A stretch of 63,977 bases of DNA, filler included, from Hyphochytrium catenoides (taxonomy: Eukaryota; Protista; Hyphochytriomycota), in NCBI GenBank assembly GCA_900088475.1. It is 5 parts of 5 records of this genome, joined end to end, with 100 filler letters (N's around TTAATTAATTAA, not from the genome) between each part and the next. Parts side by side here need not be neighbours in the genome. Positions count along the whole stretch, not along the records: positions 1 to 9,771 come from FLMG01001473.1; 4 more parts are not named here. One strand, written 5' to 3'. The notes below the pieces were generated by a model that did no database searches, was not told the DNA's origin, and saw nothing but the letters and a program-made list of their open reading frames with translations. The position numbers were made by a program, and so were the translations under genes. This document shows positions 1 through 9,815 of this stretch, piece by piece (the stretch's first letter is position 1; each line of letters begins with the position of its first letter).

Positions 1-1104
1 AGTTTGAAAGGCGAAGATGAACCTAGAAAGAAGAGTCCACGAAAGCCAGTCATTAAAGGTGCGAAGGATCCATAAGAGATGCCTGGCTGGGTGAGGGTCC
101 ACCACAATCCACAGTCAAACAAAGGGGGTTCCTTCACGTGCTAGACAGAGATGAGAGTGATAGGGGGGAAAGAGATATTTTAGATTCCCCATAACTGTAC
201 GTCACTAAGATCATAAACACTGACAAAAAGTGTGCAGTCTGGGAACTCATTTATCTCTCATTATTCTGTCTCTCACCCTACTCTACAATAGTTCTTTCCA
301 TCCATATCCCTGCCACTCTCTGTCTTGAGTTAATCTTCATGACGTCATGTTCCAATTTTCAGCCCACCCACCCCATAGAGAAGGAAAAGAGGAGGGGATC
401 TAAGGCAAACCGTCAAACGCAGTTTAGCAGGGGTAGAACTCCATAGGTTATGTGCTCACACAGCTTGTATCAGGTTTGCCACGATGGCCTGTCAACCACA
501 AAAAGTGGACCTGGTGCCTTTGTCTTGCTCCGGTGGGTGGGGCTCCTGGTCTCTCCAACATTATTCTCGGACTCGCTGCCTAATGTTCTCCATCTCTTCA
601 CCATCTAACTCCTCTCCTGTCCCTCTCTGTAGTACCTGTAGTCTGTCTCGGTCTCCAAGAACCTAGGTTTCTGTACAACTCAATAACGGGTTCTAGAAGC
701 CTCTCTTTCAAGCTCTGTCTCCAGAGCAGAACGTATCTCTCCTGGGTCTATTTTAGACCATAAGGGCTATTACGTACCTCCCACGCGGCCGAGATCAACA
801 CTCTGTCTAGTGAAACTCTCCCCCTCGTGAAAGCTCTGTCTCGACGCTTCTTGACTGACTAAGATCCTTTACACGGAGAGAGACAGAGTGAGGAAAGAGA
901 TGTACGTTGCAAAACAGAGTGAGGAGAGAGAAACATTGGATAAAGGGAATAAAGAGTGATGGAGGGAGGACGAGGATGTGAGAGATACGAGGAGAGTTGA
1001 CAGACTAAGAAAGAGAGAAGGGAAGGGCGTTATGAGGCTGGTGTGGTGGGGGCTTCAAGCTCCATCTCTTGTGATGCTCAACACACGTGTCCTACCTTCT
1101 CCTG

Positions 1105-1106
<2 letters not shown>

Positions 1107-1151
<45 letters not shown>
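1107..1151. repeat. (CT)n microsatellite, representative of many in the window
   Basis: Uninterrupted tc dinucleotide run; similar runs at ~8151-8196, ~11919-11979, ~23204-23274, ~58321-58382, ~63175-63211. Confidence 0.95.
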
Positions 1152-1159
<8 letters not shown>

Positions 1160-1878
1160 TTCTTTCCTTCTCTCGGTCTCTCTCTCGCTCTGTATCTCTC
1201 CTCTTTGCTCTCTTTCTTCTGTCTTTTTCAGCTACACGGTCTCTCTCTTTCTTCCTTTTGTGTCTCTTTATTGGCGTTTCGCGATCTCTCTCTTTCTCTC
1301 TCTCTCCTCGAGGTGTCACGTCGCTCCTGCCTCTCTCACTGCAGCGGCTTTCTTTCCCTCTGTCTCCCATCCTCTTATGCCAGTTGCTTGGCTTTTCACT
1401 CTCACTCCTTCCTCTATCTTCATCACCTATCAACCCTTCTTCTTCTTCTTGTGTCCTGTCTCCGAGAGGAGATAGTGAATGAGGAGATGGGATGATGAGG
1501 AGTCGTCAGCCCTGTCGCTCTTTCTCTCATCAGCCACCGGTCCAGCAGCAGTGGTTAGCCAAAAAGACGGAGAAGGAAGACCCCAGTCTCACTATCCTCA
1601 TGCTCTTCTTATCATCATGAAAAGCTTTGAAGGAGAAGAAGAGAAAGACCGAGAAGAAAGCGTTGCAGGCAGCATTCTGGCTCGTGGATGATGATCATGA
1701 CCTGCATACGCTTATGCACAGCTTTATGTACTGGAAAGGAGAAGAAGGAGGAGATGACGAGTTGATCTCTGGTTGCTTGTAGTTCCTTCGCCTGTCTCCC
1801 ATCTCTCAGGATGGAGCTGTGTTCTCCGTTTCCTATCTCTTCCGTCTCTCTAGCCTCGTGGCTTTCCATCTGCAGAAG

Positions 1879-1988
1879 CTCGTCTTCTTGTGACTTTCTG
1901 CCATAAAAGGAGAGGAGACTAGCGGCGGATGATGGCAGGTCGTATCTCTCCTCCTTTTATGGCAGAGGAACTTGCACAACATGACGAG
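1879..1988 (+). ncRNA. pre-miRNA-like stem-loop (candidate)
   Basis: Perfect 16-bp inverted repeat TCTGCCATAAAAGGAG (1897-1912) / CTCCTTTTATGGCAGA (1951-1966), extended by G-U pairs and outer stems TTGTG/CACAA and CTCGTC/GACGAG. The structure is seen; expression is unknown. Confidence 0.35.
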
Positions 1989-2380
1989 ACCAAGGGAAGC
2001 GTCGCCTCTCATTCATCACTTCTTACTGCACTACCGCAGGCACCTCGGGCTCTACAGCCAGTCCTGCTGCGGCTAGCTGGTATCGAGACTCCAAGAATAG
2101 TTGCAAAACATTACTATCTTCAACGCCTGTCCCAATCTCCGTAGTTGTTTCTATCTCTTCTTGCTCTTCATTCAATCTTGCCCATCTCACTCCCATGCAA
2201 TCTCCCCACCACCACTACTAGCCCGTCTCTCTCTCTCTCTCTCTCTCTCACTGTGTCTCTCTGCTGATTGTTATTCTTTTTCTCCTTCGTCACTTCTTTC
2301 TTCCTGATACGGTGCAAGGAGGAAAGTCAGTGCAGAAACAGCTGGTGCAGGAGGCGGCCCTCCTCTCAAGAAATGGTTCT

Positions 2381-3025
2381 GGTCTTACGAAATGAGTGCA
2401 CAGAGAAAGCGAAGGTTCTTGTTAGTAAGAGGTTGTAAGATATCTTCTAAGGTCAATGGTGTGACACTGTTGTTGATGTCATTGAAAATAGCGGAGTGAG
2501 CAGTGAAGGATAAATGGTAACCTCACGGTCCCTATACCTAAGGAACCTAACGTTGTGAGACTCAGAGGAAGTGTTGGAACATGTGGGACTCTCACCCTTG
2601 GGTTGCGATGATCAATGGGGCAAGCTGGTGACAGGCATTGCCTGGCAGCCAGTATAGGAGGTGTCACAAGATTTATGACACAAAGCCTCATCGTGTGACC
2701 ACACTGGCACTTACACGTGCCTCAGAGGCACTTTGGGCCAGTGAACCTGGACAGATTTGACCACATTCGTAGTTCTTTCCTTCTCCTTCCTTATCTTCTT
2801 GCTTCTATCATATTCTTCTTACTCCTAAGAACTCTCTATGAAGTAGGTACCATGAGTAGGACTCTTAGGTATAGGGACAGTGAGGTTACCATTTATCCTT
2901 CACTGCTCACTCCACTATTTTCAATGACATCAACAACAGTGTCACACCATTGACCTTAGAAGATATCTACAACCTCTTACTAACAAGAACCTTCGCTTAC
3001 TCTGTGCACTCGCTTCGTAAGAACC
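2381..3025. repeat. Long inverted repeat (~150-bp arms, ~320-bp spacer)
   Basis: 2394-2542 is the reverse complement of 2864-3011 with 3 substitutions and one 1-nt indel by manual alignment; weaker similarity extends to 2381/3025. Confidence 0.92.
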
Positions 3026-4368
3026 TTACTGTTCTTATGCTGCTTGATGTCAGAACGCTAGAAAAAATTAAAGGAAAACTCAGCACTATGTTTGCCTTCT
3101 TCTCCTTCTGCAGGAGCAAGAAGAGGCTTGACTTAGAACTACGTCTCCGCCTTTCATCCCTCCTCTTTCTCTATCTCTCTTCTTTCCTGTTCTTCTGTGT
3201 GTCTGTTTATCTATCTGTCTCTCTTGTTGCTTCTTTTCTGGTCCTGACCAGTTCTCTCTTTTGTTCCACCAGAACCTCAGCCTTCTCCTCTCTCTCTTCC
3301 GTAAGGTCTACGTCATTGTCATGATCAATCAGCACTATATTCTCCTTCTCCAGCATCGACCAGCGCTCTCTACATAGTTCTAATTCTGCTTTGTCTCTGT
3401 CTTCTCTTCTTCTTTCCTCTTCTTCGCTCCTACGAGGCGTCTGTCTCCCTCTCTCTTCCTTTTTTATTATTCTCCTTCTCCCTTTATTTGCTCTCGCTGG
3501 CTACTCTTTCTCCTTCCATCGTCGTCCTTTTCTTCGCCACTCATCACTCCTCATCATCATCACGGCCATCACGGCAACGAGACGTCTTCAGGTTGGAGGG
3601 GCGATGACTCGCCTTGAAGAATAAAAAAGACAATGTACTTTACCATGATGGGAAAGAAGATGACGTCCTATGCCGCCGTTTGTTCCTCGTCCTTTGGCAC
3701 CAGCAGCAGGCAAGAGTAGATTACCTGTCCGTAGTATGTCATCGAGATCTCCTTACTCTATTATGTGGCCAGGGGAAGGAGAGACTAGAGAGAGAAAAAG
3801 AGAAGAGAGAGAGAGAAAAAGAGAAGCGAGAGAGGGTAAAAGTAGACCTATAGAAGAGTTATGGGGGGAAAAAAGAGCAAACTGCAAGAGACAGAACCAA
3901 AAGAAGACCAGCTACTCATAGATGATAATAGATGTAATAGACAGAGCGCATCATTTGTATGCTTGCGAGCAGGGAAGACTGTAGAATTAAGTATTAGAGA
4001 TTGCTCTCTTTGTCAGCAGAAAGAGAGACAGGGAAAGAGAGAAGTAGAAAGAGAGAGAGACAACCATGTCGTATAGCAGCGGGAAGCAGCCGATAGCTAG
4101 TCCTGATCGGCAAATAATGTTGACCGACCTTCTCAGCTTTCTTTTCTAATCCTCTGGCCCCCTCCGCTTCCCCCTTACCTCGGCCAGTCNNNNNNNNNNN
4201 NNNNNNNNNNNNNNNNNNNNNNNNNNNNNNNNNNNNNNNNNNNNNNNNNNNNNNNNNNNNNNNNNNNNNNNNNNNNNNNNNNNNNTCTCTCTCTTTCTCC
4301 GCTCTCTCTCTCTTTCTCCTCTCTCTCTCTTTCTTTCTTCTCTCTCTCCCTCTCCCTTTCTCTCCCTC

Positions 4369-4411
<43 letters not shown>

Positions 4412-5129
4412 GTTCTTGTCGTCCTTTCAACTAACGTTGGTCATGCTGACAAAAAAGTACTTTTCGGCCTTACTCCTCCTTCCCCAACAGTCTACTCAAT
4501 CGTGATGAGAACTGACTCAGAGTGTAGAAAGGTTATACCTCCTCCGACGGACGGGAAGAGAAAGCGAACGGACACGCCACCCCTACACATCAAGGTAACG
4601 GTGGCAACAAAGAATAAAAGAGAAAAGAAGGAGATAATAACAAGCGGCTGAGCAGCCTAGTGAGGAGCAATGATACCAAAGCGGCTGAGCAGCGTGGCCC
4701 ACTTGTGGCCGAGTGCTTCTATGGGAGAGAGAGAAAAGACTTGAAAATAGATGATGAGTGATTGAGAGAAAAACATAGAAGAGGGAGAGAGGAGTGTAAA
4801 GTGAGAGAAGCTAGAAGACCGATTGAAGTGCTAAGTTAGAGAAAGAGAAAGAGAGAGAGAGGAGGAGAGAGAAAAAGAGAGAGAGAGAGAAAGAGAGAGA
4901 GAGATAAAAAGATAAAGAGATAAAGAGAAAGCTGATGGTATCGCAATTGTTTACAAGTGGAGAGAAGTTATAGACTAGTAGCGGACAAGGAGAGAGAAGC
5001 AGCAGCGCGTAAGCGCTTTTCAGTTCCTTGTCGTTCAAAGTAACCCTTTGCTATGTGAGAGAGAAACTAATAAAAGTGAGAAGAGTCCTTCTTTCTCTCT
5101 CTCTTCTTCCAAACAGGCTATATCCAACA

Positions 5130-6470
5130 CTAATGAGGGAACGGACAACCGCCGCCAGCAGCGGTGGCTGGCGGTCCAGCCATGGCCGAGGAGTTATTGA
5201 CGCTGGCCGTGCTCTGTCGTCTCGCGGCGTGCTGCCTGTGTCCATTCATATAGATCTTCTTCCTTCCAGGCAGTATATTCAGGTCCTTGAACCAAGCCGT
5301 CGTAGAGTCTCTGGCCTTCTCCATCAGCTTCAGCACTGAAGATCCGACGCCCTGGCTCTCCTTCTCTCCATCTTTCTTGTTGGTCGAACCATTTGAGGAG
5401 CTACCGGCAGAAGTTGTGCTCCTTCTCTTGTCAAGGTTCCCCTTCGCTTTTGTGGTCTGCTTCAAGAACTGCTGATAATATGGAAGAAGAAGATTGAGCA
5501 CTTCCTCGGTGAATGGCCTCCAGAAGTCAATGCGTCTGCCGTCCTTCTCATAGGTCTGCAGTGTCTTGAGCCTCAACTTCGAAGAGATATTGATCTCATC
5601 CGAAGCCCCTTCTTCTACGTGATTTCTCATTATGTCCAGCGTTAGCTCACCTCTCTTGTCGGGATCTACCTCTTCCTCGAACCTCAGGGCCAACTCTATG
5701 TACTTCATGTTCTCGGGGCAATGCTGCCTTACCATGTACTTTGTGAACTCCTCCTTGACGTCTGGCTTGTCTTTCAAGGTCTGATAGAGCATCAAGATCG
5801 TCGTCTCCTGCTCTGAGTAGTATCCATCCTCGTCTTTGACATAGTGCCGGGTGAAGAGGTCGTTCTGGATCCAGAAAACCTTAGTGATCGCCTCAAGAAG
5901 AGCACTCTGTGTCTCTGGTTTGCCCTTCAGATCAGGGCTGGTGATGATCTCTTTGACCAGCAGGGCGTGGAGAAAGCCTAAGAGAGCGTTGATGTGGATA
6001 TACTCGACGTGCAGATTGCTTTTCTTATTCGACTTGACGCTGTGCATCCTCCCTATCCAGTCCATGAACTGCACTGTCTTCTGGTCAATCTCTCCCGAGA
6101 AAATCTTCATGAAGTAGCTCTTCAAGAAGTCTTTCCGCACCTGTATCTCGTCATCTTTCCCTTCCGTCGTGTCAGTCGTGTCTAAGGAGTTCCTCTTCTG
6201 CTGCGTCCGATTGCGATGGTTTATAAAGACACTCTTTGTCGCGTCGTAGCTGAACAGACGGCGATAGGCATGGTCTAGCACAGGCTTGAGGCAGTTGTCC
6301 AACAGGAAAAGATGGTCAATGAGGCACTGACTGTCTGTCTTCGTGAAGCCGATGAACTCTGCAACGTGCTGATATCTGTACCAGAGATCCGTGTGCAGGA
6401 GCTCCCGGTTAACAAAGTGAAGAGTCATCACTGAGTCCTGACGGCGAGGAGGAGGAGACTTGGGCGTCAT
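5130..6470 (-). CDS. Protoglobin (globin sensor) domain + RGS domain fusion protein, 446 aa, intronless
   Basis: N-half has protoglobin-family motifs LHTDLWYRYQHVAEFIGFT, AYRRLFSYDATKSVF, IGRMH (proximal His), LHVEYIHINALLG, KVFWIQNDLFTRHY. C-half has an RGS pattern: FTKYMVRQHCPENMKY, GASDEINISS, EEVLNLLLPYYQQFL. Ends GGCPFPH. Confidence 0.85.
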   Translation of the reverse strand: MTPKSPPPRRQDSVMTLHFVNRELLHTDLWYRYQHVAEFIGFTKTDSQCLIDHLFLLDNCLKPVLDHAYRRLFSYDATKSVFINHRNRTQQKRNSLDTTDTTEGKDDEIQVRKDFLKSYFMKIFSGEIDQKTVQFMDWIGRMHSVKSNKKSNLHVEYIHINALLGFLHALLVKEIITSPDLKGKPETQSALLEAITKVFWIQNDLFTRHYVKDEDGYYSEQETTILMLYQTLKDKPDVKEEFTKYMVRQHCPENMKYIELALRFEEEVDPDKRGELTLDIMRNHVEEGASDEINISSKLRLKTLQTYEKDGRRIDFWRPFTEEVLNLLLPYYQQFLKQTTKAKGNLDKRRSTTSAGSSSNGSTNKKDGEKESQGVGSSVLKLMEKARDSTTAWFKDLNILPGRKKIYMNGHRQHAARRQSTASVNNSSAMAGPPATAAGGGCPFPH

Positions 6471-6804
6471 TATTGGTGTTCCTCTCTTTCCTGACGTCTC
6501 TGCTGCTTTTTTTCCACTCCTCTTGCAAAAGAAGTAAGGTAGCTCTGTGACTATATCTGTGCCTCTGGCGTCGCGCTACGGCAGAGGACTTCTTCTCTCT
6601 CGGTTGTTCTCTCTCTCTCTCTCTCCCTATTTCTCTCTCCTTCAAAAAAAATAATAGGAAATTGAGGATGAAGAAAATTCTTATCGATGCTCAGGCTATA
6701 ATGCAGGCGTGATGGCGGTGGGAATGAGTTGGTGAGGAGAGAAGTGGAAGAGGGCAACTGAAGGCTTGAAGAGAACATGAGAACGACCCAACTGTGACAA
6801 AGGG

Positions 6805-6840
<36 letters not shown>

Positions 6841-8151
6841 AAGAGCGGCGAGCGAGCGATGATGACACACAGGAGACAGACGTAATATTTTAAGCTGCTC
6901 TGGAGTTATAGAGGCTACTGGAGAAAGATGGCGGAGAGAGAAGAGAGGCGATGCACAGAGATGATGATGCTTAGAAGAGGAGGATGAGCACCGAAGAAGC
7001 CAGCTCCTTATTAGGGTTCCCAAGACAGCTCTTCACATCCAAGCTCTCTCTCTCTTTCTCACTCTTCCTTTCTTTTTTTCTCTCTCTCTCTCGCGCTCTC
7101 TCTGCCTTTTCTTTCGGCGTCGCCCTTATCAAGCTCTGCTTCTCCTCCTGTCCTTTCTCCCCCTGTTCCGTTCTTGAAATTTCCTGCTCTTACGAGCGCG
7201 AGAGGGTCAGGTAGCCCCTGACAACAACTGAGCACCAGCCTCTTAGTGAGAGACAGAAGATCTTTGTATTGATCTTATCAGCTGAACTCTGCTATAACTG
7301 TCAGTGGAAGGGGATAGGGAAGAGATAAGATCAGGGAAGACGGCAATGATAGGATAAAGAAGGGAAGAGAGAAAGAGAGGAGAAAGCAAAAGTGGCAGAG
7401 AGAAAAAGGGAATAGAGTAAGAGAACCGACAGACAAGTAAGAAGAGAGGAGATTGCCTCTGTCGACGACTTGGCGCCATAGGAGTGCTAAACATCGCACT
7501 GATTGGGCAGCTGGATGTTGCAAGAGAAGGCAAGCAACAAGGAGAGAGAGAAAACAAAAGAGGATGGGGAGACTTGCATACAAAGAACAAACAGGGACAG
7601 CAAAGAGAGAAACAGGAAAAGAGCAAGGGAGAAGAGCATTTCTTTCGAATGTAATAGGTATGGAGAGCGAGAAGCAAGCACGAAGAAAAGAAGGGAAAGA
7701 TGGGACGAGAAAGACACTGGAGGCAGCAGCAGCAGATGGAACTAAGGCGATCCTGTCATCCTTGTTATCCAGGCAAAAATAGGCAGGTATGGGGCCAGGA
7801 AGAGCAGGGCAGCTGGCGGAGAGGCTGTGGAAAGGATGACGCGGGCAGCAGGGCAGTAATCAACCGGGGACGTTATAGAGAAATGACGAAGCCTCTTTGT
7901 GTCATGGAGAAGCAGCCACAGGCACCAGAAAAGAACGTTGCCATAATAGGGCCTGCACCAGGAGAAGAGACAGAACAAAGAAAAGAGAAGTGTACTAGGA
8001 CAGCAGGTGAAGTGTTCACGAGAGAGAGAGAGAGAGAGAGACACAAACAGACACAGGCAGACAGACCGACCAACCAAGGCAAGCGATCAAGAAAGTGAAG
8101 AGAGGGAGGGAGCAAAGTCCCAGGATGGGTATGGACAGCGAGAGAGAAGGA

Positions 8152-8201
<50 letters not shown>

Positions 8202-8395
8202 ATGATGGGGATGAGGAGCAGAAAGAAACGGAGGGGACGTGCCTGACTGGCAGCAGTAATAATAGTAACGGTCGATTAGATCAGTTTACAAACCGCATAT
8301 TGTGAACACTTGGTAAGTATTATTATCGGGCAACCCCTTTCCAACAACGTTTCATATTTGGGCAGTGGGCAAAAAGAGAGACAAACAACAGACAG

Positions 8396-8430
<35 letters not shown>

Positions 8431-8500
8431 ACGAGAGAGAGAGAGATGTGGAGAAAGACAAGGGGAGAGAGGATGCACCAGAGAGAAAGGCAAGGTAGAG

Positions 8501-8540
<40 letters not shown>

Positions 8541-9815
8541 ANNNNNNNNNNNNNNNNNAGAGAGAGAAGCCCATCGGCGGATGAGCTTCCGGAAGGGCGA
8601 ACAACAAGGCGAATAATGAAGAGAGAAGCTGGAGAGCAAATGCTAAAAATAGTCACCACTCTGACTGCCAGTGCCCGTAGCACCTTTTGCAGGTTAAAGT
8701 TTGCTTTGCTCGTCTCCCCCAGCGCGCGGCAGGCCCAACGTAACACGACGGAGAGCTGGCAGGAGAGAAGAGAGAGAGGGAAAGAGGGGAAAGGTGTAGC
8801 GTGAGACCAGCAAGTACACATGAGAAGAAAGAGATGTTGAAAGAGACGAAATAAGAAGGATTGAGAGAGAGAGACACACAAAGAGAGTCAGAATAGGAGA
8901 GAGACAGACAGACAGTGAGAGAACGAAGACAGAGAGAGAGAGAGAGAGTCGGGAGAGGAAAACGCAGAGATCAAGACATAGAGAGACAGAACGAGGTAGT
9001 AGGGAGAGACAGCGAGATAGAGGTAGACAAAGCGTCCGAGAGAGAGAGAGAGAGGAAAGTCACCAAGAACGAACGATAAAGCGCGTCTCAAGACGTGTGC
9101 TGCCCTATCGCTCTTTATTCCTCCTGCTAACATCAATGCATCGAACTGGGTTGGCAGAACTCACAGCCTTTCTCTGCTGCTCAGACTGCGCATCATCTCT
9201 ATCTTGGAGCAGCCTTGGGCTGTAAGGAGGAGAACCGGGAGACATGTGACTGAGTTCAAAGTGGAAGAGAGAGGCGAAGAGATATGTGAGAAGGAGATAT
9301 GAGAGAAAGAGAGAGAGAGAGCAATGGATGTACGGCCGAAGAATGGTGCCATCAGGAACATTTCTTCCTCCCCCGAACAAGACAAATGACGTCAGCTGTT
9401 GGTAACCTTCTTTCTTGAGAAAGGTAAGGCAGCGGCAGGAGGCGAGAGGAGAACAAGCAGAAACAGAGAGAAAGAGAGAGAGAGAGGAGGAACAAGGGAG
9501 ATACGATGACCTAAAGCCGTCCATACATTAAAAGGGTGCGGCAGAAGCGGCAGAAGGCAACAATTACTATTGACAGGAAAGAGTGCATCGACGCTGAGGA
9601 GAGAGAGAAGAGGAGAGAGTGCGAGAAAGAAAGAGAGAGTGAAGAGAGCTTTGGAAGACTGCAGCAGTTCACGGAATAACGGCCGGACGAAGGAGGAATC
9701 TCCTCATCTTGGAAAAGCAAGCTAAACGCTTCCATTTATACACAGAATTTATCTCTTTTTGTTCTGTTTCCNNNNNNNNNNNNNNNNNNNNNNNNNNNNN
9801 NNNNNNNNNNNNNNN

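Follow-up and report, generated by a model that had tools for sequence, protein, structure and literature searches.

A single gene of Hyphochytrium catenoides joins a sensor globin to a divergent RGS domain, a candidate haem-based input to heterotrimeric G-protein signalling

The window analysed here is a 63,977-nucleotide stretch of Hyphochytrium catenoides DNA (assembly GCA_900088475.1), composed of five genome parts joined by filler, and our subject is a gene in its first part (FLMG01001473.1, positions 1 to 9,771) that encodes a sensor globin followed by a predicted regulator of G-protein signalling (RGS) domain. The lone convincing gene in these 9771 bases is an open reading frame (ORF) on the minus strand, running from 6470 to 5130, which is also the only long reading frame there without low complexity. 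It is complete and single-exon (5130..6470), and comprises 446 codons from the ATG to a TAG stop at 5130-5132. Upstream of the ATG, the frame is closed by a stop 35 codons away, and the base composition of the ORF is of the coding type, with a GC content of 0.68 at third codon positions versus 0.36 at second positions. The N-terminus and C-terminal motif of the protein align with the full-length ends of its relatives, while an exact-sequence look-up showed that the 446-aa protein is absent from existing records. An earlier note on this DNA had proposed that positions 5130-6470 hold one uninterrupted ORF joining a protoglobin domain to an RGS domain. That note gave the coordinates exactly but left the strand unstated, and the ORF, read directly, carries both Pfam domains above their curated cut-offs.

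The scaffold has many simple repeats, as well as N gaps at positions 4190-4285 and 8542-8558, features that would be compatible with an assembly chimera in which globin and RGS sequences from separate loci were mis-joined. However, neither gaps nor repeats occur within the ORF, and the domain junction at ~5780-5830 is crossed by two contigs, X1 (4919-6495) and X2 (5332-6600), which come from two of the source study's samples and were assembled separately. Each contig has its own substitutions and the two have in common an in-frame 3-nt deletion at 5377; such differences indicate variation between alleles or strains of the source organism. This deletion falls at approximately codon 365, in a low-complexity linker, and is the only indel; it keeps the reading frame. 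Ten substitutions are found in the ORF, six synonymous and four conservative (R>K, E>A, T>A and V>I). The globin part is also matched, at 98-99%, by two 150-nt pieces of an independent rhizosphere metagenome, and all three of these environmental differences are synonymous. A rough dN/dS of ~0.18 was calculated from ~283 synonymous and ~1055 non-synonymous sites, a value based on small numbers, to which sequencing errors at positions of low depth may have contributed. Together, the junction-spanning contigs and the bias towards synonymous variants count against a chimera as well as against a dead gene. The fusion of globin and RGS sequences in one gene is therefore confirmed as real, and a mis-assembly is extremely improbable. 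Separately, the X1/X2 haplotype differs from the reference sequence by a cluster of substitutions in the 5' untranslated region, at 6496-6546.

The N-terminal half of the protein belongs firmly to the S (sensor) globin family and has its 3-on-3 fold. Pfam Protoglobin (PF11563) matches residues 32-214 (5829..6377, minus strand, as for all features below) with an E-value of 1.2e-31 and 110.2 bits, against a cut-off of 25, and covers positions 4-156 of the 158-position profile. Within this domain, the motif AYRRL at residue 68 provides the distal B10 tyrosine (Tyr69, codon TAT, 6264..6266), FINH at residue 82 provides the CD1 phenylalanine (Phe82), which lies 13 residues past B10, the same spacing as in protoglobin, and GRMH at residue 140 provides the proximal F8 histidine (His143, codon CAC, 6042..6044), the presumed ligand of the haem iron. 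The top match of the globin among proteins of solved structure is the globin of a Geobacter globin-coupled sensor (GCS; 2W31), whose proximal His93 pairs with His143. Sensor-globin relatives were compared in two alignments, of 22 and 92 sequences. His143 is invariant in the smaller alignment, where Tyr69, Phe82, Leu116 and Trp200 are nearly invariant; D137, D204 and Y210 are invariant in this alignment only. In the larger alignment, R32, F39, D46, Y69, H143 and Q202 are each at least 90% conserved, and all are present in the query. We infer that haem b is bound by the globin, with His143 as its ligand.

Structural modelling agrees with this assignment. A single-sequence AlphaFold2 (AF2) model reached a predicted local distance difference test score (pLDDT) of 38, whereas in the model built with the 92-sequence alignment residues 20-215 have pLDDT values of 94-98. 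Foldseek comparisons gave TMt values of 0.91 for the AfGcHK globin, 0.85 for Geobacter GCS 2W31 and 0.84 for HemAT, with a range of 0.78-0.91 that includes protoglobin. VIA-align likewise placed AfGcHK first (Z 19.5, root-mean-square deviation of 1.7 A over 152 residues), with Z-scores to the top GCS sensor globins of 19.5, 19.3, 18.3 and 17.3. The next ranks were taken by the sensor globins of Thermosynechococcus, Geobacter, HemAT, protoglobin, DosC and Bordetella, whereas ordinary haemoglobins scored well below these, at Z ~11-12.

The C-terminal half is assigned as a divergent RGS domain because a Pfam profile and the register of two signature motifs both point to it, an assignment made on sequence evidence only. 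Pfam RGS (PF00615) matches residues 231-337 (5460..5780) with an E-value of 2.7e-7 and 31.4 bits (cut-off 23.9), spanning positions 5-110 of 117, whereas a scan with the prokaryotic models of NCBIfam returned no match for the protein. The first motif, CPEN at residue 251, supplies Glu253-Asn254 (5709..5714), and C-P-E-N-M-K-Y aligns with S-S-E-N-L-R-F-W of RGS7 such that this pair coincides with the Glu-Asn of the RGS7 S-E-N. The second, EINI at residue 292, supplies Asn294 (5589..5591), and S-D-E-I-N-I-S-S-K aligns with P-S-A-I-N-L-D-S-K of RGS7, placing Asn294 on the Asn of INLDSK. We take E253/N254 to be equivalent to E87/N88 of RGS4, and N294 to N128, all of them residues in contact with the switch regions of G-alpha. 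Of the three classical elements that contact G-alpha, the domain keeps two: the Glu-Asn pair and the Asn that touches the switch region. An ESM Atlas feature search with residues 218-350 returned RGS clusters as its top three neighbours, at scores of 0.77-0.78 that are below the 0.9 trust level, and we treat this result as a lead only.

The two domains are separated by a linker of about 10-15 residues. In the AF2 model, the inter-domain segment (residues 215-230, 5781..5828, pLDDT ~71-83) consists of a loop at ~211-219 that leads into helix 1 of the C-terminal module. After the RGS domain comes a Ser/Thr/Lys-rich linker of ~100 residues (338-441, 5148..5459), where pLDDT values fall to 33-56. 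The earlier note had read the N-terminal half as a complete protoglobin-type domain with candidate B10 Tyr, CD1 Phe and F8 His residues, and the C-terminal half as an RGS domain that keeps the EN pair and the Asn of EINI, and had suggested a HMMER comparison with the Pfam Protoglobin and RGS models. Both models score above their gathering thresholds, and every one of these residues has been located.

To place the protein among its relatives, 1.84 billion representative proteins were searched using phmmer (E <=1e-3), which yielded 272 matches. The best 150 of these 272 are all confined to query residues ~3-252, i.e. the globin. The nearest relatives come from chytrids, Blastocladiomycota and Basidiobolus, whose sensor globins share 35-38% identity with the query, and identity to the closest fungal sensor globins reaches 38% in the phmmer alignments and 36% over the columns used for the tree. 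The family also extends to Coemansia, Rhizopus, Dikarya, Physarum, Naegleria and Cyanophora, while no plant orthologue was present among the phmmer matches. A maximum likelihood tree of 92 globin domains placed the query as sister to a clade that contains all labelled Dikarya, with support of 97/85.

Several relatives have unusual domain arrangements of their own. A Cyanophora protein of 2207 aa (P0006) contains four protoglobin domains, an Entophlyctis sp. protein (P0008) combines MoCF_biosynth and MoeA_N domains with a C-terminal Protoglobin domain in a gephyrin/molybdopterin-synthesis-like arrangement, and a metagenomic protein from JGI (P0001) is a fusion of cytochrome-b5 and Protoglobin domains. 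Tandem globins or unannotated extensions were also found in longer relatives. Metagenomic eukaryotic contigs carry arrays of five to six sensor-globin ORFs in tandem on one strand (L001, 1384-9049; L007, 867-7999; also L002-L004, L006 and L008), which are reminiscent of the four-globin Cyanophora protein.

The query ends in G-G-G-C-P-F-P-H, where Cys442-Pro-Phe-Pro-His446 (5133..5147) forms a tail motif common to 29 of 115 relatives. A Cys-Pro dipeptide lies past the globin domain in these 29 proteins, with 32 occurrences observed versus 5.3 expected from tail composition, and almost all such tails have the form x-C-P-F-S/T-G (for example P0002, P0004, P0038, P0041, P0044, P0046, P0048 and P0092). 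The labelled proteins with this CPF tail are mostly from Dikarya; by its own tail sequence the query is a member of this class, consistent with its position in the tree. A separate set of 34 of the 115 relatives, mainly from chytrids, Blastocladiomycota, Zoopagomycota and Mucoromycota, lacks the CPF tail and ends in a hydrophobic, tail-anchor-like segment (among them P0007, P0010, P0011, P0016, P0018 and P0025), which suggests that these sensor globins are membrane-tethered. As the query shares the CPF tail with its sensor-globin relatives, the RGS domain and the ~100-residue linker look like an insertion that separated an ancestral sensor globin of fungal type from its tail. A Cys-Pro-hydrophobic sequence is the signature of haem regulatory motifs, and C442-P-F matches CP[FVIL] and lies in a flexible segment, the disordered C-terminus, so the tail may be a second, transient haem or redox site. 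The searchable literature provided no link between haem-regulatory or Cys-Pro motifs and protoglobins, and no account of the x-C-P-F-S/T-G tail.

A second globin-RGS protein was sought by several routes. Pfam analysis of ten longer phmmer relatives revealed no RGS domain in any of them, and the whole protein, when used in a word-based homology search, gave five matches, all to the globin only, while word-based searches with the RGS region, within the protein and alone, returned nothing. Only noise came from a phmmer comparison of all 196 retrieved proteins with the RGS and tail region. A scan of JGI and ENA metagenomes identified nine loci that match the globin only, and a six-frame phmmer search for RGS sequences in these loci was negative. 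In the ESM Atlas, structural searching recovered only an ascomycete globin-sensor cluster, and a feature search with the whole protein gave no usable match. No fusion of a protoglobin or sensor globin to an RGS domain was found in the searchable literature, a search that did not extend to InterPro. A census of fungal globins mentions only 'unidentified' C-terminal extensions (PMC3287990), a review of globin diversity lists no RGS among the outputs (PMC7475203), and a eukaryote-wide survey of G-protein-coupled receptors (GPCRs) and RGS proteins does not mention globins (PMC3971589). The globin-RGS architecture is therefore probably absent from the literature, and the earlier note's impression that it was undescribed has held up, with no counterpart in databases or searchable publications.

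The protein has a sensor globin N-terminal to a signalling output in one polypeptide, which is the defining arrangement of a GCS, while its output falls outside the described classes. Bacterial GCSs pass the state of the haem to fused outputs, and known outputs comprise MCP, GGDEF, His-kinase, STAS, cyclase and HD-GYP domains, without RGS (PMC7475203, PMC10882959). Gene regulators are a further class of described output. Like the bacterial and archaeal GCSs (HemAT, AfGcHK, EcDosC, BpeGReg, Geobacter GCS and GCS-HD-GYP), the query combines an N-terminal S-family globin, an F8 His and a B10 Tyr with an output in the same chain, and their globin folds are nearly superimposable on its own (Z 15-19.5). 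Unlike them, it has an RGS output, a eukaryotic host and a disordered tail with a CPF motif. The earlier note had stated that GCSs normally carry prokaryotic outputs; this stands in so far as an RGS output is new, but eukaryote-type outputs do exist, as the oxygen-sensing adenylate cyclases of trypanosomatids are eukaryotic GCSs (PMC7719234). These enzymes resemble the query in coupling a globin to a eukaryotic signalling pathway, in their case a second-messenger pathway, but they have a cyclase output and no RGS link. The novelty is thus the RGS output rather than a eukaryotic GCS as such.

In sequence, the query is closest to the fungal sensor single-domain globins, with which it has the signature residues and the CPF tail in common. 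It differs from them in carrying an RGS domain before the tail and in evolving much faster, while they have no recognised second domain. Its RGS half resembles the R4/R7 proteins RGS4, RGS7 and RGS10 in the Pfam RGS match and in the alignment of the Glu-Asn pair and the switch-contacting Asn, but two features of canonical RGS domains are absent from it, the conserved Trp and the last-helix Asp/Ser/Arg patch. We know of no canonical RGS protein that carries a haem domain, although RGS domains are widely shuffled (PMC3971589). A connection between a globin and G-alpha has a precedent in human neuroglobin, which in its ferric form binds G-alpha-i and functions as an inhibitor of guanine nucleotide dissociation (GDI), such that the redox state of a globin haem controls binding to a heterotrimeric G-alpha (G-alpha-i/o; PMC4842972). 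However, neuroglobin acts in trans through its own surface, as a GDI rather than as an RGS domain or GTPase-activating protein (GAP), belongs to the M/F globin lineage and is not fused to another domain. No other established globin-G-alpha connection was found in the searchable literature.

Considering these features together, we give about even odds (a probability of roughly 0.5) to the reading that the gene encodes a eukaryotic GCS with an RGS output, in which the state of the haem alters access of the RGS domain to G-alpha. In such a sensor, haem b would be held by His143, and either the binding of O2, NO or CO, stabilised by Tyr69, or a change in the redox state of the iron would alter the globin, which, like the bacterial GCSs, is probably dimeric. 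The short linker would relay the change, via the loop at ~211-219 and then helix 1 of the RGS module, and docking of the RGS domain on activated G-alpha would be altered. The predicted outcome is G-protein signalling that is tuned by oxygen, NO or redox status, with the C-terminal Cys-Pro motif as a possible second, transient haem or redox site. A stronger version is that this protein is the first haem-based gas or redox sensor wired directly to heterotrimeric G-protein signalling, where the state of the haem, possibly with the Cys-Pro site, switches the grip of the RGS domain on G-alpha; we advance this tentatively, at odds short of even.

Several results weigh against a haem-gated RGS output, most of them concerning the C-terminal half. 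Residues 330-335 (5466..5483) read PYYQQF in place of the D-S-Y-x-R-F patch, so the D-S-x-x-R contacts are lost, and the conserved Phe-Trp of RGS domains is replaced by Tyr-Ile. PYYQQF was located in the sequence, and the Pfam span suggests that it lies in the last RGS helix; the RGS7 alignment stops just before it. The earlier note's caution that this motif is degenerate was justified. Pairwise comparisons with the solved RGS7 and RGS10 domains gave E-values of ~0.4-0.8, which are insignificant alone. AF2 modelled residues 220-351 as all-helical, with low confidence (pLDDT 40-83) because no homologues were collected for the RGS half and alignment depth was therefore lacking. Because the Foldseek and VIA-align lists for the full model were filled by globins, the lack of an RGS match in them is uninformative about the fold of the C-terminal half. 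In the globin tree, the query branch is 1.66 versus a median of 0.49; its exact position is uncertain as a consequence of this very long branch, which could reflect relaxed constraint. Finally, the fusion is known from one organism only, and there is thus no conserved architecture from which to argue function.

The insignificant pairwise matches and the missing fold match, along with a designed helical repeat that scores as well as or better than the solved RGS domains and Atlas scores short of the trust level, would fit a C-terminal half that is another all-helical module, scoring as RGS by chance or through convergent composition. This is quite improbable, as the Pfam match exceeds its gathering score by 7.5 bits and covers 90% of the profile, both signature motifs are in register with RGS7, and the three top Atlas neighbours are independent RGS clusters.

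The altered contact residues (DSYxRF to PYYQQF, and FW to YI) are more relevant to what such an RGS domain could do. Loss of the D-S-x-x-R patch means that the RGS half may not be a strong GAP, and under the haem-gated reading its GAP activity could instead be weak or specialised, or it could bind G-alpha-GTP as an effector antagonist. The same substitutions would suit a targeting or scaffolding role, in which a GAP-dead RGS-homology domain, as in GRK, axin, AKAP10 and sorting nexins, parks the globin near G-alpha, GPCRs or membranes. The globin would then keep its own chemistry (NO dioxygenation, O2 buffering, or peroxide or redox reactions), and the RGS domain would replace the hydrophobic tail anchor that many of its relatives carry. 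RGS domains that are inactive and serve as scaffolds are a familiar type (PMC3971589), and the tail-anchor-like ends of 34 of the 115 relatives would make targeting to membranes or partners a theme of this family. Yet the residues most used to define the G-alpha interface, the Glu-Asn pair and Asn294, are kept, and the very short linker in the model points to conformational coupling and not to a loose tether. Furthermore, the function of the fungal single-domain sensor globins is itself unknown (PMC3287990). We regard targeting as somewhat unlikely, though a serious possibility.

The restriction to one organism and the long globin branch, as well as the position of the gene alone in 9.7 kb of microsatellite-rich DNA, could also be explained by a young, lineage-specific fusion that is decaying or unexpressed, a functionless accident. 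Such a gene would not be expected to look as this one does: the frame of 446 codons is intact, with GC3 at 68% and GC2 at 36%, six of ten variants are synonymous on ~21% of sites, the sole indel is in frame, and all family-invariant globin residues are kept. This explanation is unlikely.

Outside the gene, the remainder of the 9771-base part is eukaryote-like non-coding DNA with dozens of (CT)n/(GA)n microsatellites. Strand asymmetry flips near 4500, with CT-rich sequence on the plus strand over 1000-4500 but on the minus strand over 4500-5000 and 6500-9500, such that the sense strand of the gene is polypyrimidine-rich; ~300 nt upstream of the ATG, a long CT tract is followed by AG (6808-6839). 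An inverted repeat at 2383-3022, with arms of ~167 nt (2383-2549 and 2857-3022) that are 95-96% complementary around a 307-nt loop, looks like a miniature inverted-repeat transposable element or foldback element. All matches from Rfam and tRNA scans were sub-threshold and fell on (CT)n tracts, and were rejected as low-complexity artefacts. These included a Leishmania Hsp83 3'UTR element at 914-1193 on the plus strand, which scored 27.5 bits where the gathering score is 90. This match, the intronless gene and its polypyrimidine-rich sense strand would have fitted a kinetoplastid-like origin, which was rejected because the coding density is too low and the globin is fungal in type. A plant origin, to which the rhizosphere matches and GA/CT microsatellites might have pointed, was rejected as the protein collections contain no plant orthologue.

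G-protein signalling is braked mainly by RGS proteins, none of which, to our knowledge, is regulated by a gas or by haem. GCSs, for their part, serve as the model for the conversion of haem ligation to a signalling output, and all described outputs that we know of are prokaryote-style enzymes or cyclases. If the proposed coupling is correct, the H. catenoides protein would represent a new class of GCS output and a receptor-independent, intracellular input of O2 or NO to G-protein signalling. Domain fusions often reflect a functional link, and this natural fusion predicts one between its two halves, providing a compact two-domain system in which to ask whether O2, NO or redox status gates G-protein signalling. 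The recurrent CPF tail suggests that a second Cys-Pro site may be shared among these globins, an idea that is new and testable. More broadly, the fungal sensor globins have had no known role since their census of 2012, and the fusion would offer a first functional handle on them.

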